Of a stretch of 64,000 nt of DNA, positions 9,663 through 42,789 are shown piece after piece. The translations under genes and the position numbers were made by a program. Position 1 is the stretch's first letter; each line of letters opens with the position of its first letter. The stretch is taken from positions 23,312,001-23,376,000 of the forward strand of contig OZ241832.1 in NCBI GenBank assembly GCA_965202585.1, in the 5' to 3' direction. The stretch comes from Thalia democratica. Its lineage: Eukaryota. The notes beneath the pieces were generated by a model. The model was given only the letters and a program-made list of their open reading frames with translations, was not told the origin of the DNA and searched no databases.

Positions 9663-11269
9663 ATGGAAAACGTTTTGAGACTAACCATTGGAAAGAATAA
9701 CATTGATGAAGGTTTATTAAAGGCACTTCTAATAAGCATGTGGCCAAAAATCGAGAAAGTTAACATTACTCAAAAGGCCAGTTATGTGGTATTTTCAACT
9801 GTTGAAGAAGCAAAACTAATGCTGGAGTCAAAATCAATGATTCTTGAGGGTTACTGTGTAAAAGTGGAGAAGCTGGATAGAAAGACAAAAAAAACATTTC
9901 AAAATTTTAAGTAATGTTGCCCCTTCTAACAATAAATGTGACACGCTATCAAAAGAACTTACCTGTTTACAAACGCAGAATGAAACAGAGACTGCTCCTG
10001 ACAAAAGTAACCAAAACAATAATAAAAAGAAACGTACCTACTCATCGGTAAGCATTTATATGATACATTAAAGTATAACAAAGTAAAATAAAACATCATA
10101 AAACTGTTTGTAATCTTAATTCTTTACAGTTTTTTAAGTCTATATAGTCTATGACTTAGGTTAAAATATTAGAAACAGACTAAAAATTTATAATATTATA
10201 TTTAGCATTTAGTAACGCTTAACACTGTCTTATATACAATAGAAATAGTAGTATAATTAACTTTAATTTATTAAACTATTTATCTTTACAGATATTACAA
10301 AACTATACTAAAATAATGACAACACCCAAAATAAAGAATAGACGTATAAGTAAAAACTATACTCAGTTGTTTTCAAAATTAAAAACAAACAAGTATCTTG
10401 AAGAAATCGAAACATCAAAATGGTTGAAATGTTTAAACAACTCAATGAAACAACATACTTGGCACCAAAATGTTATGCAAAGTTTTGTTAAAAAAGACCA
10501 ATTTGCTTCGATTCAAATGAGTTGCAGTGATCTTTGGTCAATAGCAAACGAACAAAGCTACATAGAAGATCCTGTTTTAGACGCAGTCCTAAACGACAGT
10601 TTTAAGGATCACAAACTAATAGGGTTTATTGAAACAAGTGTTTTCAATGCAATTGAAAACCCTTACTTCAGTGAAACGACTGTGACTCCTTTCAAAAATG
10701 ATAAAGACGCGTACGTTGCCGTCAAGAACATAAACAACAATCACTGGATATTTGTTTTCCTCAACTTTTTAAACAAAACGCTTTATGTTGTGGATCCAAG
10801 GCGGAATGATGAGCAGATAGAAATAGCAAGAAAAGTTATGAAAGCTTTTAAACAAGTGCACCATAACGAAATCAATGCAAGTGAAACATCGAAATGGAAC
10901 TTTATGAGCGATGAATGGAACTTTGATTGTATTCAGCACAATATTCAAAGAGATTTTGTCAACTGCGGTATTTATTGTATGGAATACGCTTTGAAAGTTA
11001 AAAATGATTTTCCTAATAAACCTTCGTACTTACTCGTTGAAAGTAACTTTAATGATAAAAGGCAGTTTTATACCGCAATGTTACTAAACGTTTCAAAACC
11101 AAAGCTTAAAGTCGATAATGAAACAATAAAAGAAGAAGAAGAAGAATTTATTGAACATCCTTATTATGTGAGTAAAAGTTTAGATGAAGACGGATCAGGA
11201 TTGGTTATAAGATTAAGAAGAAAAAAAACTTGTAAAAAGAAAGTAGAATCTGAAAGAGATATTTTTTAA
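9663..11269 (+). CDS. Two-exon gene: N-terminal RRM-like domain + Ulp1/SENP-family (C48) cysteine protease, with one apparent 1-nt frameshift
   Basis: Exon 1 9663-10047 (RRM-like SYVVFSTVEEAK...ILEGYCVKVE; frame shifts in the A8 run at 9887-9894), phase-0 GTAAGC...TTTACAG intron 10048-10291, exon 2 10292-11269 open for 325 codons with His (NNHWIFV), Asp (YVVDP), Gln/Cys (QRDFVNCGIY); AATAAA at 11323. Confidence 0.8.
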
Positions 11270-26574: not shown

Positions 26575-28693
26575 TTATAATTCCTCAACACATTTTGGCA
26601 TTGCAGACCACTTTCCATCAGATTGACATTTAATCACCTGAGGGCCGGCTCTGTTTGAAATAGATGTTATTGCTTTTTTGTAAAATAAAAAAAATAAATT
26701 TTTGATTTCTAAAGAATTTACGTTTTAGTTGATACTTTGTAAAGTTTGAAAGTATTCGAAAACCCTTTAAACCAAACTTTCTATTAACTAAACAAGATAG
26801 GTAGATGTATTTGCGCACAATAAACGCGTAACTAAAAGCCAATTTAACTAACAATCATAAGTTTAACACTTAAAAAAAAACCTTTTAAATCCCGACTTGC
26901 AGAACACACTGAGTTTCTCATTGTATCGGTAGGGTCTCGGCTCTTCGAGTATTGGCTGGTAGGGTCCCTCTAAAATCATGGTCTTCACGTTAAGGATGTC
27001 GTGGGGTTCTTGGCTGCATACTATCGGTTTGCATTCGGGTATTTCACCTACCCATTGACCATTTTCGCCGCAAACTGTTGTTTTGAGTTTTGCTTTGTTG
27101 ATTTGTTATTTTTTGATAAATAAAACTATAGACTGTTTTATGATAATCTCCAAAATAGTCTTTTTAAAACTAAAACTTGTGCTTTACATATATAAACTAA
27201 AATAAATTAACTAATGAATGTTGTTTAATAATATAGGGATTGCAAGAACATTTGACGGTAAATTTTAAAACAATCTTTTTTTATACTTCAACTTCACAGG
27301 TTTAAAAAGAAGTAAACATTAAGACTTAAGTTTTTGAACAACTTAATTAAACTATTTTGGTGTATTTGTAACAAAGTTATCAGCATTTTAAAATAATTTT
27401 TAGGACGGCTTTATCCAAACTTAACTTTTGAGTTGTATAGTTTAATAACTGTTATTTAATTTCAATATTCAAAATAAACATCTACTTTTTTTTTACTAAC
27501 CAACAGTGTTTGTTTCGCTACTAATTTCGAACCCACTCTCACAAGAGTAAGTGGCAACGCTGCCTATCTTTTTTTCATCTGAACTGCCAACATTCACTTT
27601 TCCGTATTTTGGCAAAACTGGGGAATTTTTGCATTTTATCTCTTCGCATGTAGGTGTGGGATTTGACCACTTTCCTGCAATAAAATTATAATGAATTTAA
27701 TTTTTTAACTTTATCAAAAAAATTATACCTATGTTTTTTTTAGTTGAAAATGAAGACTCATTTGAAACTATATATAAGTTTGTCTATTGTCAAAGCCTTT
27801 ATATGTGTTTAAAATGAGTATCTTTACAAAATTCTTTGAGCATTCAGGCTCTATTTACAAAGATGAAAAACTAAGTAGTTTTTATTGTGGAAGAGACACA
27901 GAAAATTTTAACACAGAAAATTACTAATTAGTGCTTTTGTGAATTTTTTAGAATTTAGTATATAAAAAGATAAAAACAAAAGCAACTTATTGCATAAAAC
28001 GATTAATTTTATCAATTTTTTTAGAATTATTGAAAACTAACCATATTTCAAACAAGTTGCTTCGCTTTCGCCATTCAACTTGAATCCTTTTTCGCAGGAA
28101 TACTTCATAACACCTCCTTGTTTAAAGCTCTGACCTTCTATCGTTCCATCCACTATGTAACCAGGTGAAGGGCAATCTTTTAAGATAAAGTTTTAGTGAA
28201 TAGCTGTAAGTTATGCTTGTTGTAAAAAGCAAACATTGTAACTAAGTTTATAACGTATTACTACGTAAGGATATTTAATTAAAATCTTCTTTTGGTAGTC
28301 ATTTCAACTTTTCAGAGTAAACAACTGTTAATAAATAGTTATTGGTAGTAGGTATTGTCTGTTATTCATTAAAACTAGTTAATTAAAGATATAAATCAAT
28401 AACTAAAAAAATACATTATTAATTTTTTTTTTAAATTCACGTATATAACTCAAACCTTTATTCATTAAACGCTTATCTTCTTCTAACTTTCTACAGTTTT
28501 CTCTCCTTTGAATTTTTCTGCATCCTGTAGTAAAAAAACCAAGGGCCGCACAAGACTGCAGTTGTTTTTTGAATCTCGGCTTGTCAGTTCCTATTAAGTC
28601 TTTCGCAGTGCATTGCTTCGTACCTCCAGCACTGACCGAACTCAACAGAACGAAGAAAAGTATAATACTCAACAAACAAAAATTTACTCGCAT
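26575..28693 (-). CDS. Secreted protein A: signal peptide + basic CX19CX9CX8C domain + 3 CCP/sushi modules (271 aa)
   Basis: Exons 28693-28456, 28176-28042, 27674-27501, 27074-26882, 26650-26575 (816 nt, open; phases 1/1/1/2); 12 CCP cysteines and GxWS/WxG motifs; AATAAA at 26523-26528 on the minus strand. Confidence 0.9.
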
Positions 28694-29407
28694 TTTTTAT
28701 TCCAAAATATTAATTTTTTTTTTAAATCTAAAAGAGTAGTTTTTATATAAAAGAATTTTTATATTAGAAATATTTATTTTTATAGGTATTAAGTAGGTTA
28801 AACAGCAGTTTAAGAGCTTAAGTACTTATAACATAATTCAAGGTTTATCAAGTTTATTGAGACATAGCTTTATTACCATTAAAAGTAATTAAAGTTATTT
28901 TGACACTATATACTAATTTTAATACATATGCCTAGTACAACTATTCTTTTTTAAGTAATTAAGTTCACCAAACCCAATGTTAAGTAGAGTACTATGGAAA
29001 TAACATGATAAACTGTTTTTTAGTACACTAAAGACAAATAAGTTGTTTAAAAACAATACTAAATATTCATTAACTGTTTTCTTATTTATATAACTCCATT
29101 TAATGCGTTTTACTGTCTTTGTTAATATTTTTAACTGAGCTTACTTAAAATTATGATCTTAACAGATTAGTGAGAGTAGTTTGCTAAAAACATACTTATA
29201 GTTTTAGAAATCAATAGAGTAACAAACTTCATTATGAAAATAATTCAAATATAAAATTAAACAATAATAATTTTTCCAGGTGTGTAAGTCAAAAAAAAAC
29301 TGTTTAGGTATTGTAATTTACTTATAACATTTACGTCCGATTCTCACTGTAAATATTTTTACATGCAAACGTTGTCAGCAATTATAAATATGATGTGCTC
29401 ACTAACC

Positions 29408-32400
29408 TGGATTCTAATGGTAAATGTTAAGGTATATATAAAACTAGCATGACAATAAAAGGTCATGTTGTATTAAAGAACAATTGCAAACACTAACAAA
29501 TGAATAAAGAACATCTAATTTAGAAATTACTCTAAATGAGGTATAGTCAAATGATCAATATTTAACAAAAATTTTACACAAGAATTAAATCTAACAGTAA
29601 TTATACTTTGAGAATGCTTCAATTAGAATGAGAACTAACTGTTTAAAACTAAAACTATAAAAAAAATATGAGAAGAAAACAATGTTAAATAAAAACTTTA
29701 CACAAAACAATCAAACAATATAAATGTCTACCCTTAAATAACATGTTTACTGCAGCAGGCAGTGGCTAGAATGCCCCACCACTCTCTGTTGCTGGTTTAT
29801 ATAACAATGTTTTTAACTCTATTCAATATAACATCAGGAATTTCTTATCTGCTCTTTATTTTCTCCTTATCTTAACTTGCATCAGTATAACACTTGACCT
29901 TGCGAGCTTTCTCTTAAACGCTTGGATGGACAAGGATTTTAGCTAAAAATTTTCCATAACATTTCAACAGTTATTAAGTACAATTTGATATCCTGTTACA
30001 CTTTCTCATTTTTCACTTTTTATATAAAATATTCACTTTGCATTTCCTCTGCATTTTTTATGACAACAAACACTAAGCTTTCTTCATAAACAAGAAAAAA
30101 ATGCATCATATCAAAAAAGTTATTTGTCTCAAAATTACTACTAAGATTTAAAAAAAAAAAGGCCTGAAAATAAAATAATTAAATATTTTTTTTACAAAAG
30201 GCTACTAGCTCTAAACAGTTTTCTATTATTGGTAATCAAAAAGAAAATTATGTGTTTACCAAGCTTTAACAATTCACTTTAACTTCTAAGTAATATTAAA
30301 CATGTGTCACAACCTACTTTATAGATTGGAGAAATTGAAAAACAGATACAAAATAAAAACACAAAAAAGTCAGTCAAATGTCATACCTATGCAAAATCCT
30401 ATGATATAAATTCCTAAACATTTTAGCATGTTACTGGTCTTTGCTGTCTTAGTTACTTATAGTTGTTGTCTTGTTCTTTTAAGATTTAAGAGCCTTACAT
30501 AACTTTAATACTATTCACTTTTCTGATTAAATTTTTTCAGATCTACTTTGAATGTGTGGACTAAATTTTGTCAGTTCTACTTTGAGTTTTTGAACTAAAT
30601 TTTTACAGTTTAAAATTAACTTTTTGGACTTAACATTTTTCAGTTTCTCTTTGAATTTTTTGAATAATTTTGTCAGATCTATTGGAACTTTGTGGTCTAA
30701 AACTGGGGCAAAACCCTTTGTAATTTATTTTACTTAAACTTTGTCACTTACTTTCTGTGACTTAAGGACTTAAATTGTGTCTTTGTACCTTTTTGGTTTA
30801 ATTTGACTGAAACATTGTCACCTACTTGTGTGACTTGAAAACTTAAACTGAGTCAATACCCTTTGTGATTTACTTTTTAATCTTACTGTAGCATGTTTAT
30901 CAATATGACCCATTATTGCCTGATGTTATTTTCAAGCCCCTATGTTTTTATACTTATGGTTAAACCTAAAGGGCTTCTAACAGGGCAGATTTTAAATGTA
31001 AGTATAGTTTCCTGAAAATTAAGTTCATGCTTTATTGTAATTTTCTCCACTACTGTTAAAAATTTGCACTGAATAGTGATCAAAGACAAAACATAATAAA
31101 CATGTGATGAATACTACCTTAAAATTTAAGCTTATACACTAGTAAAATTTTATTGGGTAAAATTTGTCTTGGTCTTATTTAACTCTTACCTGAAAAGTAA
31201 TTATTTACCTGATGACGCCAATTGTAACCCATAGGTGTAGATTATCTAAATATTAAACTTGTACTATTATGCTAGATGCTGATATTAAACAATACATAGG
31301 GCTACTTTATATAAACTATAAGTGACATTAAAGAGCATATTGTAGTAAAGGACAATTGCAAACACTAACAAATATATAAAGAACATCAAATTTAGAAAGT
31401 ACTATAAATGTGGTTAAAACTTTTTCACAAGAATTAAATCTAACAGTTATTATACTTTAAAAATGTTTAAATTAAAATAAGAATTAACTGCTTAAAACTA
31501 AAACTATAAAAAATTATGAGAAGAAAACAATGTTAAGTAAACACTTTACACAAAAAATCAAACAATATAAATGTCTATTTTAGATTAACATGTTTACTGC
31601 CGCAGGCTGTAGCTAGAATGCCCCGACCACTCTGTGTGGATGGTTTATATGTTCTTAACTTTATTCAATACTTCATCAGTAATTTCTTATCTGCTCTTTA
31701 TTTTCTCCTTATCTTGACTTGCATCAGTATAACACATGACCTTGCGAGCTTTCTCTTAAACGCTTAGATAAACAAGGATTTTAGCTTAAAACTTTTGATA
31801 AAATTTAAACAGTTATTAAGTATAATTTGATATCCTGTTACAATTTCTCATTTTCACCTTTTAAATAAAATATTCACTCTGCATCTTCTCTGCATTTTTT
31901 ATAAAAACAAACACTAACCTTCCTTTATAAACAAGAGAAAAATGCATCATATCAAAAAAGTTATTTGTCTCAAAATTACTATTAAGATTTAAAAACAAAG
32001 TTAGAAAAAAACAAGACCAGAAAATAAAATAATCAGACATTTTTTTACAAAAGGATACTAGCTCTAAACAGTTTTCTATTATTAATAATCAAAAAATAAA
32101 AATGATGTGTTTACCAAGCTTTAACAATTCACTTTAACTTCAAGTAATATTAAACATGTGTCACAAGCTACTTTATAAGTTGCAGAAATTGAAAAACAGA
32201 TACAAAATAAAAACACAAAAAAGTCTGTCAAATGTCATACCTATGCAAAATCCTATGATATAAATTCCTAAACATTTTAGCATGTTACTGGTCTTTGCTG
32301 TCTAAGTTACTTATAGTTGTTGTCTTGTTCTATTAAGATTTAAGAGCCTTACATAAAATTAATATTATTCACTTTTTGACTAAATTTTGTCAGATCTATT

Positions 32401-35400
32401 TTGAATTTATGGACTAAATTTTGTCAGTTCTACTTTGAGTTTTTGGACTAAAATTTTACAGTTTAATTTTGACTTTGTGGACTTTAAGTTTTTCAGTTCC
32501 CCTTTGACTTTTTTGAATAATTTTGTCATATCTATTGTGACTTTGTGGTCTAAAACTGGGGCAAAACCCTTTGTAATTTATTTGACCTAAACTTTGTCAC
32601 TTACTTTCTGTGACTTAAGGACTAAAAATGTGTCTTTGTACTTTTTTGGTTTAATTTGACTGAAACATTGTCACCTACTTGTGTGACTTGAAAACTTAAA
32701 CTGAGTCAATACCCTTTGTAGTTTTTTTTTAATCTTACTGTGGCATTATTTTCAATATGACCCATTATTGCCTGATGTTATTTTCAAGCCCCTATGTTTT
32801 TATAGTTATAGTTAAACCTAAAGGGCTTTTAACAGGGAAGATAGTAAATGTAAGTACAGTTTCTTAAAAATTAAATTCATGCTTTATTGTAATTTTATCC
32901 TCTACTGTTAAATAAATTGCACTGAATAGTAAAAATGACAAAATTTAATAAACATGTGATGAATACTACCTTAAAGTTAAAGCTTATACACTAGTAAAAT
33001 TTAATTGGGTAAAAATTGTCTTGGTCTTATTTAACTCTTACCTGAAAAGTAATTATTTACCTGATGACGCCAATTGTAACCCATAGGTGTAGTGTAGATT
33101 ATTTAAATATTAAACTTGTACTATTATGCTAGATGCTGATATTAAATAATACATAAGGCTACTTTATATAAACTATAAGTGACATGAAAGAGCATATTGT
33201 AGTAAAGAAAAGATGCAAACACTAACAAATATATAAAGAACATCAAATTTAGAATGTACCTTAAATGTGTCAAAACTTTTTCACAAGAATTAAATCTAAC
33301 AGTAATTATACTTTGAAAATGTTTAAATTAAAATTAGAATTAACTGCTTGAAACTAAAACTATAAATAAAATTATGAGATAAAAATAATGTTAAGTAAGT
33401 ACTTTAAACAAAACAATCAACAATATAAATGTCTATTCTTGATTTACATGTTTACTGCCGCAGGCTGTGGCTAGAATGCCCCACCACTCTATGCGGATGG
33501 TTTATATGTCCTAACTTTATTCAATATTTCATCAGTAATTTCTTATCTGCTCTTTATTTTATCCTTATCTTTACTTGCATCAGTATAACACATGACCTAG
33601 CGAGCTTTCTCTTAAACGCTTAGATAAACAAGGATTTTAGCTAAAAACTTTTCATAAAAATTAAACAGTTTTTAAGTATAATTTGATATCCTATTACACC
33701 TTCTCATCTCTTACTTTTTAAATAAAATATTCACTTTGCATCTCTTCTGCATTTTTTATGAAAACAAACACTAACCTTTCTTCATAAACAAGAAAAAAAT
33801 GCATCATATCAAAAAAGTTATTTGTCTCAATATTACTATTAAGATTAAAAAAAAAGATAAGAAAAAATAAGACCAGGAAATAAAATAATTAAACATTTTT
33901 TTACAAAAGGCTACTAGCTCTAAACAGGTTTTTATTATTAATAATCAAAAAATAAAAATGATGTGTTTACCAAGGTTTAACAATTCACTTTAACTCAAAG
34001 TAATATTAAACATGTGTCACAACCTACTTTATAGATTGCAGAAATTGAAAAACAGATACAAAATAAAAACACAAAAAAGTCAGTCAAATGTCGTACCTAT
34101 GCAAAATCCTATGATATAAATTCCTAAACATTTTAGCATGTTACTGGTCTTTGCTGTCTTAGTTACTTATAGTTGTTGTCTTGTTTTATTAAGATTTAAG
34201 AGCCTTACATAAATTTAATATTTTTCACTTTTTAGATTAAATTTTGTCAGATCTACTTTGAATGTGTGGACTAAATTTTGTCACTTCTACTTTGAGTTTG
34301 AACTAAATTTTTACAGTTTAATATTGACTTTGTGGAATTTAAGTGTTTTAGTTCCTCTTTGACTTTTTTGAATAATTTTGTCATATCTATTGAAACTTTA
34401 TGGTTAAAACTGGGGCAAAACCATTTATAATTTGTTTGACTTAAACTTTGTCACCTACTTTCAGTGACTTAAGGACTTAAATTGTGTCTTTGTACCTTTT
34501 TGGTTTAATTTGACTGAAACATTGTCACCTACTTGTGTGACTTGAAAACTTAAACTGAGTCAATACCCTTTGTGGTTTTTTTTAACCTTACTGTGGCATT
34601 ATTATCAATATGACCCATTATTGCCTGATGTTATTTTCAAGCCCCTATGTTTTTAGAGTTATAGTTAAACCTAAAGGGCTTTTAACAGGGAAGATAGTAA
34701 ATGTAAGTACAGTTTCTTAAAAATTAAATTCATGCTTTATTGTAATTGTCTCCTTTAATGTTAAATAAATTGTACTGAATAGTAAAAATGACAAAATATA
34801 GTAAACATGTGATGAATACTACCTTAAAATTAAAGCTTATACACTAGTAAAATTTAATTGGGTAAAATTTGTCTTGGTCTTATTTAACTCTTACCTGAAA
34901 AGTAATTATTTACCTGATAACGCCAATTGTAACCCATAGGTGTAGTGTAGATTATTTAAATACTAAACTTGTACTATTATGCTAGATGCTGATATTAAAC
35001 AATACATAGGGCTACTTTATATAAAATATAAGTGTCATGAAAGAGCATATTGTAGTAAAGAACAATTGCAAACACTAACAAATATAAAAAAAATTTAAAA
35101 TTTAGAAAGTTCTTTAAATGTGGTTTAAACTCTTTCACAAGAATTAAATCTAACATTAATTATACTTTGAAAATGTTTAAATTAAAATTAGAATTAACTG
35201 CTTGAAACTAAAACTATAAAACATTATGTGAAAAAAATAATGTTAAGTAAATACTTTACACAAAACAATCAAACAATATAAATGTCTGTTCTTGATTAAC
35301 ATGTTTACTGCCGCAGGCTGTAGCTAGAATGCCCCAACCACTCTATGTGGATGGTTTATGTGTTCTTAACTTTATTCAATATTTCATCAGTAATTTCTTA

Positions 35401-35552
35401 TCTGCTCTTTATTTTCTCCTTATCTTTACTTGCATCAGTATAATACATGACCTAGCGAGCTTTCTCTTAAACGCTTGGATAAACAAGGATTTTAGCTAAA
35501 AACTTTCAATAAAATTTAAACATTTTATAAGTGCAATTTGATATCCCTTTAC
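29408..35552. repeat. Tandem array of ~1.86-kb units (3.3 copies) with nested ~34-bp subrepeats
   Basis: Anchor A(A/G)(T/A)TGCAAACACTAACAAAT at 29482, 31354, 33211, 35064 (periods 1872, 1857, 1853); each full unit holds ~10 degenerate TAAATTTTGTCAG.TCTACTTTGA... subunits. Confidence 0.95.
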
Positions 35553-38500
35553 AAAGTAAATTTAAGTTTTTATAAGTAAATTTTTCCTTATAAAAATTAA
35601 ATAAACATTAGTATTTTGATATGATTAATCTTATTTTCTAATGTAGAACCTTTTTTTAGCCTATTAGCAAACACCAAACAAGTATTTTTCGCTTTGAGGT
35701 CATACTTTTAAGTGCCGTTAGTGCGTACGAAATAGCACTGTATTGCGATTACTATATTAAGTTCAGTGACAAACATTTTATTTAGTATAATCTAAATTGT
35801 TACTAAGTTTATAAACTAAAATATGTTGATTTGGCGTAGGTAAAGCTGCATGCAAAAGTCAAACTCCGTGTTAAAGCGTCGCTGTACAATTCTAAAACGC
35901 ACCCGAAATTTCACTTCCAGCTTCGGATCATACTAGACGCTTGTACAACTCTAAGAATCAAAAACTGTGTATGAATTTTCATGTTTGTCAGTCAACATAC
36001 CCTTTTTTTCAAGTTTCATGTGGCCCGGTAAACCCAAAATAAATGAAAATTGCATGATGTTCTGGTACGATTAAAAACTTTGTGTATATTTCATAACTAT
36101 ATATGTTGTACCTTTACTAAAAAAAAATTTATAGGCATAAGTCATATGTAGGGATAAAGGTACAGGGATTACGTTATTTCCAAACTAAAATATTATTTAC
36201 ATTTGCTAAGTAGTTTAAAGCAAGATACCATTTGTAAATTAAACAGTTTCACAACTATTGAAAACAACATTAGCTTGACATTTAAGATAAATCAATAAAA
36301 CTTTGTAGTACTCAGTAGTCAGCTAACAAAGCAACACTGGAATTCTGACGACTCTGGTTTGAAGTACATGATATAATAAACCTTTTATAAGATAAAAACT
36401 CGAGTTAAATTTATGGTTAAATTCAATTTTCTAGAAAAATATATTTAAGTACAAACATATTGATCTACTTTTTTTCTTTATCAAATCTATTAGTAAGTAA
36501 AAAAAATCATTAAACTTTAGTCTAAGTATTTTTTTAGCGAGAGACCTTTAGTTTTTTAAAAATATTCTTATCAGTATTTTTAATTAAAACAAAAGTACTT
36601 TAAACTTAAAAAAATTCTTAAGGTGTTAAGTGTATCTAAGAGATTTTTTTTGTTTTATTAAAGGAAGGTATCGCTTTTTTAAATACCTAAAAAGGGTGTT
36701 ACAAACATTTTTAGGAAACCCTGATACAGTGTAACCCAGTTTCCTTAATAAAAATTACATAAGCGACAGATTTAAAAGTATTTTTTTAACTTTTATTTAT
36801 ATCTAATTGATATTCTATAATTCAAATTAACTTGCTAAAATAAGATAATTTACTTCGTTCAAAAGCTCTTTTATTTCATTGATAAAAAAGTTAAAAAACT
36901 TAATTGTAAAATTTTGCTTCATTTATAAGTATTTATTATGTAATTCTTTAACATAATAGCTCGTAAATATAGACTTATATAAGTAAAAAATGTCAGTTCA
37001 GTTTTTGTTTATTAAACTAGGCAACTAAACTTAGTCTTAGATTAAGCTTAAATTATATATTTTATTATTAATTTAAAAAAAAAATACGGGATTTAAAGTA
37101 TTTATTAAATTTCAAACAAATATTACTTAAAATAAATTCAAAAACTGTTTTATTTGCGAATAAATTCATTCGTTCAATAAAATGTCACATAAATTGCATT
37201 AAAGTATCTTCCTTTAGATCCCAAACATTTTTGTGTTGTTTACCTAACGTTGATGCGTACATTATCTGTAACTACCAGTTAAGTTTACAAAATTATAACT
37301 TTATACTAATTTTAACAAAATAACTGTTAAAAGTTTACTAACAAAGTTAAATTGTTAAGCTATTTTTTACTGCAAAAAATAAAATTGTTAATTTTTTTAT
37401 TTGCAAAACAAAACATTACCTGACTTTAAAAAACTTTTTCTATAAAGTAAATAAAAAACTTCTAATAATGGGTTTTACACTTTTGTACACTTTTTTTTAC
37501 TTTAATATACACAAAAAAATAACTATTTTAAGTTATTACTTAAATTTCCTTATTAAAGTAGTTTAAATCTATTTTACAATTATGCTTTAAAAGTTTAAAG
37601 ATGTTTAAGTTTTGTGAACATAGAATCATTTAATCTATCTTTTATATGTTTTTTGTAACAAAATTTATTACATTATTTAAAGAGTAAAACTTACAAACTA
37701 CTTTAAGTATTTAAATCGGATAACTTAAACTACTCCATTAACTTTTAAATTCCTAAACAGTTTATTATTATGATTTTCGATCGCTTCTTAGGTTTTGCAA
37801 ATTAATTATTTTACAACTGGGCTGCTTTTTATGGAGCAAGCCACAACTTTGAATTGATTTTTCTTTTATCTGGTTGTTTTATAAAAGTTAATAAAAAAAA
37901 AAAGTAATAAAAAAGTACAGTTTATTACAAAAAAAATTATTGTTAAAACCATTTATAAGATTAGTTTTAGCAATAAGTCGTTTTTAAGCATTATACAATA
38001 AGTTTTTGTTAGAATTGTGCAAAAATTAGGAAGTATATTAAAGGGTGAAATATTTCTTAATAAATATTACAACTTTTTATTCCTAACGTTTTTTGTCCAA
38101 CAATATAATAAGTTATTATAATTTTTGTTAGTTTTTTTTCAACCAAATAAATTTAGTTTTAAAAGAGTTTTCTAAGAAATATTTTTTTTAAATGTTCAAA
38201 ACTATTAAAGAAACTGTTTGAACCTTAAATATATTATTGTGCTGTTCCTTATAGTACTGTTAGTTTAATTAAGTTATTAAGATTTAAAACTTAAAGTTCA
38301 CAACTTTCAAAAAGTTGATATTATTATTGAAACATTCTTATGAAACTAAAACAAAAAAAAATAATGTGCGCAATAAAAAGTTGTTCTAACACTAAGCAAC
38401 CACTTTGTTTTAATTAGTCAAAATGATATGTTAAGTTTTATTTTGTTTTCATCAATAATTAAGTATGATTAGGTCAAAAGCCCTCTGAGAGAAATTCTAG

Positions 38501-39278
38501 TTGTAAAGTAATTTGTTGTTTTAATTGGTTTAAAAATTTTCTAAAGCCTGTTTTTAAAAAGTTTTTTAACTATTATAAAAAGTCTTAACAATTAACAATA
38601 TTTAGGCATCATGTAATTTTAAGGTTGAAAGGCCTTGATAAAAAATGAAAGCTTATACTGCATTGTCTTTTAATTATATAAAACTTTTTGAGCAATACAC
38701 TTCATTTAATCTAAAAAGATTATAAATTAAACAAAGCGTACTTTTAAGTAAAAATCATACAGTAGTACTAATTAAATAAAGTTTATTTAATTATTTAATT
38801 GCTATAACAACATTAAAAACTCGACACAGTTAACCATTTATTTATTATTATCATTATCCAGCTTATCTAATTTTTAGTGCTATGTACAATGTTTTATTAA
38901 TCTTTCACGTGCTTTTAATGTACTCAATCAGTTGAACCACTTTATAAAGTTGTGCTGTGCTATATAACATTTGAATAAAACTGTATTTATTATAATTACT
39001 ATAAGTATAATAAATTTACTAACCAGGTTACCATTTCTACTAAGCTATAAAGAAATCAGCGTTTTACACGACTGTTATTTGATTGAAAAAAGCTCAGTTT
39101 TGGTATATCTATACAGATTTCTAAGTAAGTTTTTAATAAATATCATAAGTCCACAAGTTTTTAAACTGCTTATAAGCTTGCACAAAGCAAAGTCAGATAA
39201 TAATTTCGTAACAAACTTTGGTTCTACACTTTAAGTAAGTTTTTTTACTGCAGACATAATTTTATTATAATACAAAAA

Positions 39279-42200
39279 ATGCGAGTGAAATTTTATTTAT
39301 TGAATATTATTCTTGTGTTGGTTCTTTTGAGTTTAGTTTGTGCTAGACGAAAGAAACAATGCACTGCAAAAGATTTAAAAGGAACCAACAAAAAGAGATT
39401 CAAAAGTAGACTGCAGGCCTGTTTTGTTGTTGACTTTATATCTAAAAAGTGCAGGAGAATTCAAAGAAAAGAAAGCTGTAGAAAACTATCAAAAGGTGAA
39501 CGTTTAATGAACTAAGATTTGTGTTTTATATATAAGATATAACGTTAAAAGACGTTAAATCCTGGAGATCCTGATAAGCTAACCTTATCGGAATACATAC
39601 CACAGATGTTTTTGTGTCAAAACTTTATTCCGACTAACGGCGTTTCAATGCTCTCAAATAATTTTAAGAACAGATCTACGGAGTCTATAAAGTATTAACA
39701 CACATTAGAAAAAAAACATGTATAATTATGTATAATTTTAATGTGAGTAGTAACTATAAACGAACTTTATGGTTAAAAAAACAGTTTGGAATAAAAACAT
39801 AGAAAAAAAAAAGTTGTCTACGAAAATACAAATTTAATAAAAGCATATACTAACCTCAAAAAAGTTCTGAGAATAGGCAAGTTTATAAAAGTGAAAATAA
39901 AATTATTCTGTTTTAAATAACTTGTTTAATTTGTTTTTATTTGTTTTTATTTAGAAAAATAACTCTACGGAGGCCGCGTGCCAAGGTTCAGCTTTTAAAT
40001 CAAACGATCCGGGTTTAATTCCCGGTAAAAAAGTAAAAGGTGTAAAACTCGATAACCGAAAGGTTTTTCGTTCACCAGGCCCTTATGCCAAACATTTTAA
40101 GCATTTTTTTATGGTTCATTAAACAATATATATGTTACAAGCAATTCCTAATCAAAATTTAATTTTTAAAAGATTGCCCTTCACCTGGCTACATAGTGGA
40201 TGGAACGATAGAAGGTCAGAGCTTTAAACAGGGAAGTGTTATGAAGTATTCCTGCGAAAAAGGATTCAAGTTGAATGGGGAAAGCGGAGCAACTTGTTTG
40301 AAATATGGTTGGTTTTTGAATTTTTTGAACAATCATATACTCAGAGTGCTTATTAAATATGGTTTAGGATAAAATGTACATAAATATGTACGTCATTAAG
40401 TTTAAAGGATTCAAAAAACAAAACAGTTTTAAGAAATTTTTGTACTTTAATTAAAAAAATCAAAATTTTTGATTTATCGCTCGAATTGATATCTGAGATA
40501 AAATTCTTCACTTTATTAAGGTAAATGGTCGAATCCCACGCCAACATGTAAAGAGATAAAGTGCAAGAGTATGCCAGTTATACCAGAACATGCAACTGCG
40601 AATCTTCGTAACTTAGTTGAGAACAAAGTTGGTAGTGTTGCTACTTACTCTTGTCTTAGTGGGTATGAAATTAGAGGTGGAACAAACACTGTTGGTTAGT
40701 TAGAAAAATTGGATGTTCTATTACTAAGATTAACGTTGAAAATAGCATTTTAAGGTTACAAGTGTCAAAGATAAATAAAATGCTCTTAAGTTTTAACATG
40801 CGTAGAGGTGAGAAAACAAGAAAAATAGTTTCAACTTTGTTTAATCCAGGGACGTTGCTAGCTCAAAAAAGTTACGAATGTGCAAAAACTAAAACATCTG
40901 AAATAACACGTCCTAGCGGGAACACAGCAATTTAAACTACCTCTAATATTATTGAATTTAATCTGAAAAAAAGCAGTTATGTTAATACATCAAAAATTGA
41001 ATTTTGAAGTACGAGTGATAACTGTATACAAGTCAACTTATTTTGCTCCACACCCCATATGACTCTTTATGTCATGCCACTTGTGTAAACCCAGAAAACA
41101 TTCATTAAAAAAATCACAATTTAACTCAAAAACATTAATATTGTTTTCATTCAAAAATTTAAACGTATAAAATCAAACATTTAACGTAGTCAATAGTAAC
41201 AACAAGTTATGCAAATTTTTGTAACATAAAATTGTATTATTTTGATTTTTGAAGCTACAGCTTCCAATAGGTTTAATTTTGCATTGTAGCTTTTTGACAA
41301 AACAAAGCTTTAACGCGCTAAATGTTACTTTTTGGTAGTATTTAATTCGTTCAATTTTTTTACGACACTAAAAGTCCTAAAGAGTACATATATGTCAAAA
41401 TTATCTCTCAGGAGTGCATAACTAAGCTTAAATGAATACTAAAAGCTAAGAAAGCCGAGTATTTTCAAGCTGAAATAAAAGCAAGCTTTTTCGCACATAA
41501 GTATACGTTTCTGTAGATTTGCAGAAACGTACCAAGCCACGTCCCTGGTTTAATCCTTTATCAGTTTTTCAATTATTCTAGTATATATTTTTTTTAAAAC
41601 ATTTTATATAGACTTTGTTTGTTACTTTAGATATTATAAAATTTATAAAACTAACTTAATTACTACATGCCTTTTAATAAGTAAAACGTATTTTTATATA
41701 AAAGCTGTCAAACTAGAATTTTATAGTTTGTAGCAAAGCAATAGTTTTAAAGTTTCAGATTAGTTTAAAAACAAAGAAAGAATTTCCGATGTATAGTTTT
41801 TCTCTTGCTAGGGCTGTGTATGACAATTTATAATAAACGAACTTACTTAATTTAAAAAAGATTCATTTAGAAAACATTTTCTATAAAAAGTCGTTTTTTT
41901 TAATCACGTTATAAAAAATTTAGACGAAAATTAACAACAAAACAAATAAACGTGTAACCTTAACAATCTCTTATACATTGATAATATTATCATTAGAAGA
42001 CTAGTTTACTATATCTTATCTATCTTTTTACAGTTTATTAAACTAATATCTCGCACCTTAGAAATGAAGCTTGGAATGTTAACGTTCATAACAAAAGTTT
42101 TGATAGTATCTTTACTAGTACATGAAAATATAGTTTTTCTATAATCTGCGAAACAAAACAAACTGAAACCAACAACTCTGTATCTTTAACATAGAAATTA

Positions 42201-42789
42201 GTTCAATTCTTTTTTTATTACAAACCATTCTTGCAACTCTTGTGTTAACAAAATAAACAACATCTGTAAACAGTTTGTGGCGAAAGCGGAGAGTGGGTAG
42301 GTGAGTTACCCGAATGCAAACCAATAAGATGCAGCGGTGAACCCAGCGACATCGAAAATCTGGGGTTCATAAGTCTTGAGACCCCGTACGAGCCAATAAT
42401 TCACGGGCCGATTCCCTTCCGCTACAAGGATAAACTAAACTTGTTCTGTGAAAGAGGGTTTAAAAGGTTGCAGTTATTATTTGAATTTTTCGTTTCAAGC
42501 TGAGTAATATAACAGTTTTGTTTGTATTGCATGGAGTATTTAAATATGTCTTGAGCATCTGTTTTAACTAACTTTTTAAATAGTAGTAGAAAATTTGTTT
42601 CAAAGTATTTTAATAGGCTTTCAAGTTTACTCAAACTTTTAAAAAATAAATAATGAACAATATGTTAACTATTAAACTTTTAATAATTATAAAAAAAATT
42701 ATTTTAACAGAGTCGGACCTCAAGTAATTAAATGTCAATCTGATGGCAAATGGTCTGCAATTCCGATATGTGTTCCAAATCTAGTATAG
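39279..42789 (+). CDS. Secreted protein B, inverted paralogue of A: signal peptide + basic CX19CX9CX8C domain + 3 CCP/sushi modules (265 aa)
   Basis: Exons 39279-39495, 40173-40307, 40521-40694, 42274-42466, 42711-42789 (798 nt, open); internal exons the same lengths as in A (135/174/193); AATAAA at 42814. Confidence 0.88.
39969..40110 (+). mobile_element. tRNA-derived SINE copy (most complete) in intron 1 of gene B
   Basis: A-box-like GGAGGCCGCGTGCCAAGG, B-box-like CCGGGTTTAATTCCCGG, core GGTGTAAAACTCGATAACCGAAA, T-rich tail. Confidence 0.6.
40847..41547. mobile_element. 701-bp non-autonomous hAT element with perfect 8-bp TSD in intron 3 of gene B
   Basis: TIRs CAGGGACGTTGCTAGCT / ACCAAGCCACGTCCCTG (first 9 bp perfect); TSD GTTTAATC at 40839-40846 and 41548-41555; subterminal hairpin ACGTTTCTG..CAGAAACGT at 41505-41530. 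Confidence 0.9.

Follow-up and report, generated by a model that had tools for sequence, protein, structure and literature searches.

CCP (Sushi) modules are units of about 60 amino acids (aa) with four cysteines and a conserved tryptophan, and they are strung into secreted chains in factor H, in FHL-1 and, as sets of four, in vaccinia VCP and smallpox SPICE. Regulators of complement activation (RCA) bind C3b or C4b with decay-accelerating or cofactor activity, and VCP, SPICE and factor H join protein binding to the binding of polyanions such as heparin and sialic acid, which targets them to surfaces. Here, we describe two genes, A and B, in a stretch of the genome of the salp Thalia democratica (contig OZ241832.1, C8:23,312,001-23,376,000, in a genome of 802 Mb). 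We call this whole stretch of 64,000 nucleotides (nt) the window and count positions from its first letter. The predicted products are likewise secreted chains of CCP modules, and VCP, SPICE and factor H are among the best matches of their CCP exons. In the known proteins, however, the polyanion site lies on basic CCPs, whereas the CCPs of A and B are near neutral, only three in number, and preceded by a separate, strongly basic, non-CCP domain that is predicted to be helical and that we refer to as the head.

Other described proteins resemble A and B in part. In beta2-glycoprotein I (apolipoprotein H), a short chain of CCPs binds anionic lipids, lipopolysaccharide (LPS) and heparin through a cationic end, but there the cationic patch belongs to an aberrant fifth, C-terminal CCP and has no sequence relation to the predicted N-terminal helical hairpin of A and B. 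The chains of C4b-binding protein (C4BP) end in a short helical, cysteine-containing domain which, unlike the head, is C-terminal, uses its two cysteines for interchain bonds and is not cationic. Fester and uncle fester of Botryllus are tunicate CCP-containing proteins in polymorphic, lineage-specific families; going by their descriptions, fester is membrane-anchored with a single CCP, whereas A and B would be soluble, with three CCPs and an orphan head. Considered without its CCPs, the head recalls the twin-CX9C (CHCH) proteins, the plant alpha-hairpinins and the scorpion kappa-toxins, all four-cysteine helix-loop-helix structures compatible with nested 1-4/2-3 disulfides. These cystine-stabilized hairpins use twin CX9C or CX3C motifs, whereas the head has the spacing CX19CX9CX8C, is secreted and is fused to CCPs.

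The nearest architectural precedent is horseshoe-crab factor C, in which a cysteine-rich N-terminal region ahead of the sushi modules binds LPS via basic and aromatic residues (PMC10672452). Factor C shares with A and B the placement of this region before its sushi modules (cysteine-rich region, EGF, sushi 1-3), but it is a serine-protease zymogen of 120-130 kDa that also carries EGF, LCCL and lectin domains. General searches with the head turned up no sequence or fold match to the factor C region; no direct alignment of the two was made.

Results

A and B are predicted to encode secreted proteins with a basic head and three CCP modules

Genes A and B lie head to head, their start codons 10.6 kb apart and pointing away from each other, and each has five exons. 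Joining the exons gives 271 aa for gene A (28693-26575, minus strand) and 265 aa for gene B (39279-42789, plus strand), with GT-AG at all eight introns, intron phases of 1,1,1,2 and frames that are open throughout; a sequence-only reading of the window had proposed two complete open reading frames (ORFs) of exactly these lengths. The two proteins can be aligned end to end, with a single 7-residue gap where the head ends. Each starts with a signal peptide in which a hydrophobic core is followed by SVSA or LVCA. Both end 4-5 residues past the last cysteine, which leaves no room for a transmembrane segment or a glycosylphosphatidylinositol signal, in keeping with the earlier remark that no transmembrane segment is present. 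With a signal peptide and no anchor, the proteins are inferred to be secreted. A and B belong to a small family of soluble proteins of ~27 kDa that is restricted to a single lineage of pelagic marine animals, each protein being made of a head and three CCPs. The last four residues are VEEL in A-type proteins (VEDL in one copy) and PNLV, PKLV, PKLF or PNLF in B-type proteins.

Searches and structure predictions were run exon by exon rather than on full-length spliced proteins. The CCP part holds 12 cysteines (3 x 4) in 192 aa and has a net charge of -2 in A and +1 in B. Its exon pieces scored 27.6, 21.9 and 22.2 bits against Pfam Sushi (PF00084; cut-off 20.7), the 24-aa last piece scoring 18.2, which places the CCP part in this family and agrees with the three sushi modules seen at first reading. 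The best PDB matches of exons 2 and 3 were CR1, CR2, factor H, DAF, Crry and the poxvirus complement inhibitors SPICE and VCP; E values for the CCP exons against CR1, CR2, factor H and DAF ran from 1e-39 to 1e-7, and beta2-glycoprotein I, factor XIII B and C4BP ranked lower. By these matches, the CCP part reads as ordinary complement-regulator-type modules.

The head keeps four cysteines and a large positive charge

The four head cysteines are spaced CX19CX9CX8C in A and B alike, as had been noted for the ~50-aa domain that follows the signal peptide, and a recount on the mature heads returned the net charges first counted by hand, +9 for A (57 aa) and +17 for B (50 aa). Across all nine distinct heads, including relatives described below, the net charge ranges from +9 to +19. 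An alignment of ten heads, with identities to the window A head down to 35%, leaves invariant the four cysteines and eight other positions (a Lys, a Gly-Thr turn, the core residues Phe and Ile, a Glu, the Arg after Cys4 and the final Lys), with one further Arg and one Leu nearly so. Only three of the fixed positions are basic (two Lys and one Arg). That most basic residues are not fixed in position while the net charge is held is the pattern expected if charge itself is the selected property; what the head conserves would be a large positive charge rather than a set of basic positions.

At its very start, the mature A chain of the window reads Gly-Gly-Thr (28618-28627), where the corresponding residues are Val-Arg-Glu in six other A copies and Arg-Gly-Glu in one. 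At 28620-28626, DNA contigs from all three public sequencing runs searched differ from the letters of the window.

The head is modelled as a helical hairpin and matches no described family

We modelled the head with AlphaFold2 from an alignment of the ten mature sequences. The result was a confident helix-loop-helix (mean pLDDT 85.2, five models at 83-85, pTM 0.62), with the hairpin present in 5/5 models and the same helices in an earlier model that included the signal peptide. A short helix at residues 8-11 is followed by two long ones, 17-29 and 34-55, joined by a four-residue loop. Cys1 lies on the N-terminal arm and Cys2 in the first long helix, three residues short of its end; Cys3 and Cys4 lie two and eleven residues into the second. 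These modelled positions fit a nested pairing, which is most likely the one used, Cys1-Cys4 tying down the arm and Cys2-Cys3 spanning the loop. The model suggests that the head folds on its own into this helical hairpin.

Neither the A head nor the B head matched any Pfam family at E<=10, and scanning ten heads singly gave just two isolated matches at E 0.13, to RusA and to a CUB model, each from one member. A PDB sequence search with the head returned no match. Foldseek found nothing in the PDB at E<=0.001 (best E 6.3), and its best E value among the AFDB clusters was 5.6; VIA-align against 48,161 chains reached a best Z of 4.6, far below the level that the program itself treats as meaningful for helical models. 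All ESM Atlas feature scores were below 0.8; the eclosion hormone match, at 0.76, was treated as noise. Searched by shape, the ESM Atlas offered nothing beyond generic two-helix fragments from bacterial proteins with no relation to one another or to the head. Herpesvirus gH, CagA, designed helical proteins and EexN lipoproteins were likewise set aside as generic two-helix arrangements, and no fold search with the head singled out CHCH proteins, alpha-hairpinins or kappa-toxins.

We also compared the head with specific small-domain families. Saposin-like proteins, such as granulysin, have four to five helices and 2-3 nested disulfides; the head model has one short and two long helices and gave no SapB match and no saposin-like fold match. 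Anaphylatoxin (ANATO) domains are four-helix bundles with six cysteines, including CC pairs, and the head, with four single cysteines, no CC pair and no Pfam match, was rejected as a member. CHCH proteins carry two CX9C motifs, one per helix, and reside in the mitochondrial intermembrane space without a signal peptide, in contrast to the X19, X9, X8 spacing and signal peptide found here. The C4BP-type oligomerization domain is a terminal amphipathic helix whose cysteines form interchain disulfides in homo- or hetero-oligomers; it is a less likely family for the head, which gave no such Pfam match and is confidently modelled as a monomer.

The head, as modelled, is therefore a small cystine-stapled helix-loop-helix without detectable relatives outside its lineage, and the initial failure to assign it to a family stands after searches of Pfam, the PDB, 1.84 billion proteins, Foldseek, VIA-align and the ESM Atlas. 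It is a lineage-restricted orphan domain of which we found no description; the salp genome paper (PMC10686999) mentions no sushi, CCP, complement or immune genes.

The window pair is one of eight near-identical pairs

Beyond what the window by itself could tell, the genome assembly contains eight A-type head exons (95-100% identity) and nine B-type head exons, each followed by four CCP exons. All 17 reconstructed head-bearing coding sequences are open from ATG to stop with five exons in frame. The A copies lie on C8 at 23.216, 23.278, 23.340, 23.406, 23.735, 23.834 and 24.017 Mb, within a span of 0.8 Mb (C8:23.21-24.03 Mb), with one more on C34, an unplaced contig of 153 kb. Every A copy is accompanied by a B copy on the other strand, 7.6-14.4 kb away, which makes eight pairs, and the window pair is one of these products of segmental duplication. 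The first four pairs are spaced 62-65 kb apart and form a tandem segmental repeat whose unit is about the size of the window. Exons differ among copies by 0-8%. Two of the B copies look impaired: in L038 (C8:23.4157 Mb) the exon-4 donor reads AT rather than GT, and L040 (C8:23.843 Mb) has Tyr for the first cysteine of CCP2.

Neither a profile nor the most diverged foreign head, each used as a query against the genome, picked up further head exons, and the head occurs at no locus beyond the family. A genome search with exon 4 recovered the same loci and one extra A-type copy on C34 (L036:1-1148, C34:80500-81650). This copy, which has exons 2-4 but lacks exon 1, follows a lone B gene on the same strand at a distance of 700 nt and may be a headless pseudogene or part of a B-A read-through. 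The family is discrete, with 18 loci in the genome. As a taxon test, the glycoside-hydrolase-6 domain of tunicate cellulose synthase was sought as well; it gave no match in this genome, and none in the control genomes either.

B-type exon 1 is predicted to end at a shifted donor. The site that matches the A-type exon-1 donor reads AT, not GT, in 9/9 B copies, and an in-frame TAA precedes this lost donor in 8/9 of them, including the window copy. The donor AAAG/GTGAAC (the slash marks the exon boundary), 21 nt upstream of the ancestral one, keeps the phase and is the sole in-frame solution. The shift drops a 7-residue acidic linker that A-type heads and most foreign heads keep. We consider this donor a reasonable assignment, and the weakest junction among the gene models.

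Relatives of the head occur in marine metagenomes

A second finding that goes past the sequence-only reading is that the head has relatives in marine metagenomes. A head profile run against 1.84 billion representative proteins gave only four true matches, and a word-index search gave eight. These protein-level relatives, of 85-133 aa, were all found in marine metagenome assemblies at ENA, with Tara Oceans (PRJEB4352) accounting for several, and are prokaryote-style ORF calls that start at the same ATG and run past the donor into the intron. Their heads are 35-77% identical and have the same four cysteines. The contigs are AT-rich (GC 0.24-0.31; 0.21-0.32 across the window) and keep the donor AAA G/GT, and the acceptor AG/AT TGC that opens the CCP1 exon follows 307-323 nt downstream, in the same phase as in the window. 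Among JGI metagenome contigs, a profile scan gave 59 pattern matches with no relative among them, and a degenerate pattern written across the splice of exon 1 to exon 2 had 0 matches.

One related contig of 4.2 kb carries two heads on opposite strands, pointing apart, with 3.2 kb between them, which implies that the divergent pairing predates the duplications in this genome. The A/B pairing is old, and segmental duplication has carried the two genes along together, which suggests shared regulation.

This persistence, through every duplication and in the related contig, could also fit a hetero-oligomer. The head might then be an oligomerization module that joins A chains, B chains or both into multivalent CCP bundles, in the manner of the C4BP end or of collectin N termini, and the head, a helical, cysteine-containing terminal domain on a CCP chain, would suit such a role. 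We think this quite unlikely. The even number of cysteines and the confident, compact monomer model fit intrachain disulfides, both heads are strongly cationic and would repel each other, and the heads match no Pfam oligomerization family. A complex prediction for an A head with a B head scored 0.01, which gives no verdict and was counted neither way.

The head is under purifying selection

Ratios of nonsynonymous to synonymous substitution (dN/dS), obtained from Nei-Gojobori counts for A versus B at a dS of 0.5-0.8, were 0.33 for the signal peptide, 0.39 for the head, 0.07 for CCP1, 0.28 for CCP2 and 0.37 for CCP3. The head is thus constrained about as much as CCP2 and CCP3, and the substitution pattern clearly points to real coding sequence under purifying selection. 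A and B can be aligned only over the five exon blocks and a few flanking bases; their introns have diverged beyond recognition. The CCP1 exon stands out, with 96% identity between A and B in the window and in B copies L030 and L036 and 88-92% in the other six; the similarity reaches no further than some 30 nt into the intron upstream of it. Strong purifying selection (dN/dS 0.07) seems to be at work here, combined with local gene conversion in some copies.

The gene models, with their splice junctions, are deduced from comparative data, and these are strong. We find it scarcely credible that exon 1 is foreign to these genes, as a chance or decayed ORF or a separate small gene, with the CCP exons starting elsewhere. 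In its favor, our searches gave no transcript support for the junction, but the ATG, the signal peptide, the four cysteines and a phase-compatible GT donor are kept in 17/17 copies, relatives down to 35% identity keep both the donor and the CCP1 acceptor in the same phase, and no other start or signal peptide lies upstream of CCP1. The head's dN/dS likewise speaks against a chance or decayed ORF.

The same data bear on the possibility that a proprotein convertase cuts the head away from the CCP part and so yields a free cationic peptide for host defence. A cut could fall after Lys-Arg or Glu-Arg just before CCP1 in A-type proteins and most relatives, where an Arg 4-5 residues before the end of exon 1 is kept in 6/7 non-B heads; the very high positive charge, the two probable disulfides and the tandem amplification of the family, as in many host-defence genes, would all suit such a peptide. 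B-type proteins, however, have lost exactly that linker through the donor shift and are still constrained in nine copies, and the adjoining CCP1 is the most conserved module, which suggests that head and CCP1 act together. Amphipathic cationic antimicrobial helices typically have a hydrophobic moment above about 0.4 on the Eisenberg scale and a hydrophobic face. The head helices, at 0.36 and 0.29 for helix 2 and 0.20 for helix 3, have their hydrophobic face confined to the core and are in this respect unlike membrane-active helices. The low moments disfavor a membrane-lytic or membrane-inserting antimicrobial helix, and electrostatic binding of polyanions fits better. We therefore regard a free peptide as unlikely.

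Within types, the proportion of nonsynonymous differences (pN) peaks in CCP3 among A copies, and copies differ mostly in CCP2 and CCP3. Together with a family that is lineage-restricted, amplified and secreted, this would suit a reading, prompted by tunicate CCP proteins such as fester, of A and B as allorecognition or reproductive factors, acting between self and non-self or between gametes, with the head merely a matrix-binding tag. Against this stand the lack of a transmembrane segment, unlike fester, the finding of no domain with dN/dS above 1, and differences of just 1-8% between copies; we judge such a role improbable.

Features of the window

The coordinates of the two genes are collected in Table 1. 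The 10.6-kb spacer between the start codons of A and B contains about 3.3 tandem copies of a 1.85-kb repeat (29814-35666; 69-96% identity), and each repeat unit includes a short ORF with a recurring hydrophobic peptide. This repeat probably explains why the spacer varies in length among the eight pairs. Elsewhere in the window, an intron-less ORF of 317 aa lies at 10316-11269.

Table 1. Exons and predicted domains of genes A and B (window positions; a slash in a motif marks the exon boundary)
Feature	Position	Strand	Evidence
A exon 1: start codon, signal peptide (aa 1-22), basic four-Cys head (aa 23-79); donor AAA G/GT, phase 1	28456..28693	-	Gene model; no Pfam match; 8 copies 95-100% identical; donor kept in metagenome relatives
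A mature head: 57 aa, net charge +9; predicted short helix, then helix-loop-helix	28457..28627	-	AlphaFold, charge count
A exon 2: first three quarters of CCP1	28042..28176	-	Sushi 27.6 bits; best PDB matches CR1, CR2, factor H, DAF
A exon 3: rest of CCP1, most of CCP2	27501..27674	-	Gene model, Pfam, PDB sequence matches
A exon 4: rest of CCP2, most of CCP3	26882..27074	-	Gene model, Pfam; exon type at only 18 genome loci
A exon 5: end of CCP3 and stop codon; C terminus VEEL	26575..26650	-	Gene model, Pfam
B exon 1: signal peptide, then a mature head of 50 aa (39345-39494; net charge +17)	39279..39495	+	Gene model; same layout in 9/9 B copies
B exon 2: CCP1; DNA 96% identical to A exon 2	40173..40307	+	Gene model, copy comparison
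B exon 3: end of CCP1 and CCP2	40521..40694	+	Gene model, copy comparison
B exon 4: end of CCP2 and CCP3	42274..42466	+	Gene model, copy comparison
B exon 5: end of CCP3 and stop codon	42711..42789	+	Gene model, copy comparison

Discussion

How might such a protein work? The sequence-only reading had suggested that the head might be an opsonin, an antimicrobial or a recognition module. Our preferred proposal, which we hold with a little less than even confidence, is that the cationic head tethers a short CCP chain electrostatically to polyanionic surfaces while the CCPs bind a protein partner. The anchoring polyanions could be sulfated glycans in the tunic or mucus of the animal itself, or the envelopes of microbes, and the three CCP modules would provide protein-binding specificity, for instance for a C3-like opsonin. 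The whole would then be a miniature surface-targeted CCP regulator or recognition factor, comparable to factor H, vaccinia VCP and beta2-glycoprotein I. The analysis establishes the architecture of the proteins, the constraint on them, the conserved charge, the predicted fold and the type of CCP; polyanion binding and any tie to complement are inferred.

Several observations weigh against this proposal. The best CCP matches are long multi-CCP proteins and speak to the type of module, not to its function. The A-type ending VEEL is near, but presumably outside, the endoplasmic reticulum retrieval pattern, and some of the protein may be retained there. Three public runs, none of them recorded as RNA, proved to be DNA contigs across the introns of gene A, with no spliced joints at the predicted sites; 55-56% of the sequence words are present in them, introns included. 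Finally, the Cardin-Weintraub heparin motifs (XBBXBX and XBBBXXBX) are absent from A and B. Many heparin binders do without these motifs, so their absence makes membership in that motif class less likely and leaves the idea of polyanion binding as it was.

A fuller version of the proposal sees in the head a module not described before, which would fold independently, bind polyanions or microbes and have its origin in pelagic tunicates. Joined to three RCA-type CCPs, it would found a new family of soluble, surface-targeted recognition or complement-regulating proteins, with A and B kept as a divergent, co-regulated pair and their two charge classes (+9 and +17) serving two ranges of ligands. 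We consider this version, taken as a whole, doubtful.

Small orphan domains are common on secreted tunicate proteins, and the present status of the head is that of an annotated orphan, not of a demonstrated new immune mechanism. If the proposal of a tethering head holds, A and B would represent a compact two-part CCP design in which surface targeting is assigned to a separate small cationic domain, whereas vertebrates and poxviruses place the polyanion site on the CCP modules themselves. The family presents a clean orphan domain under purifying selection in an ecologically important and poorly studied lineage of the plankton.

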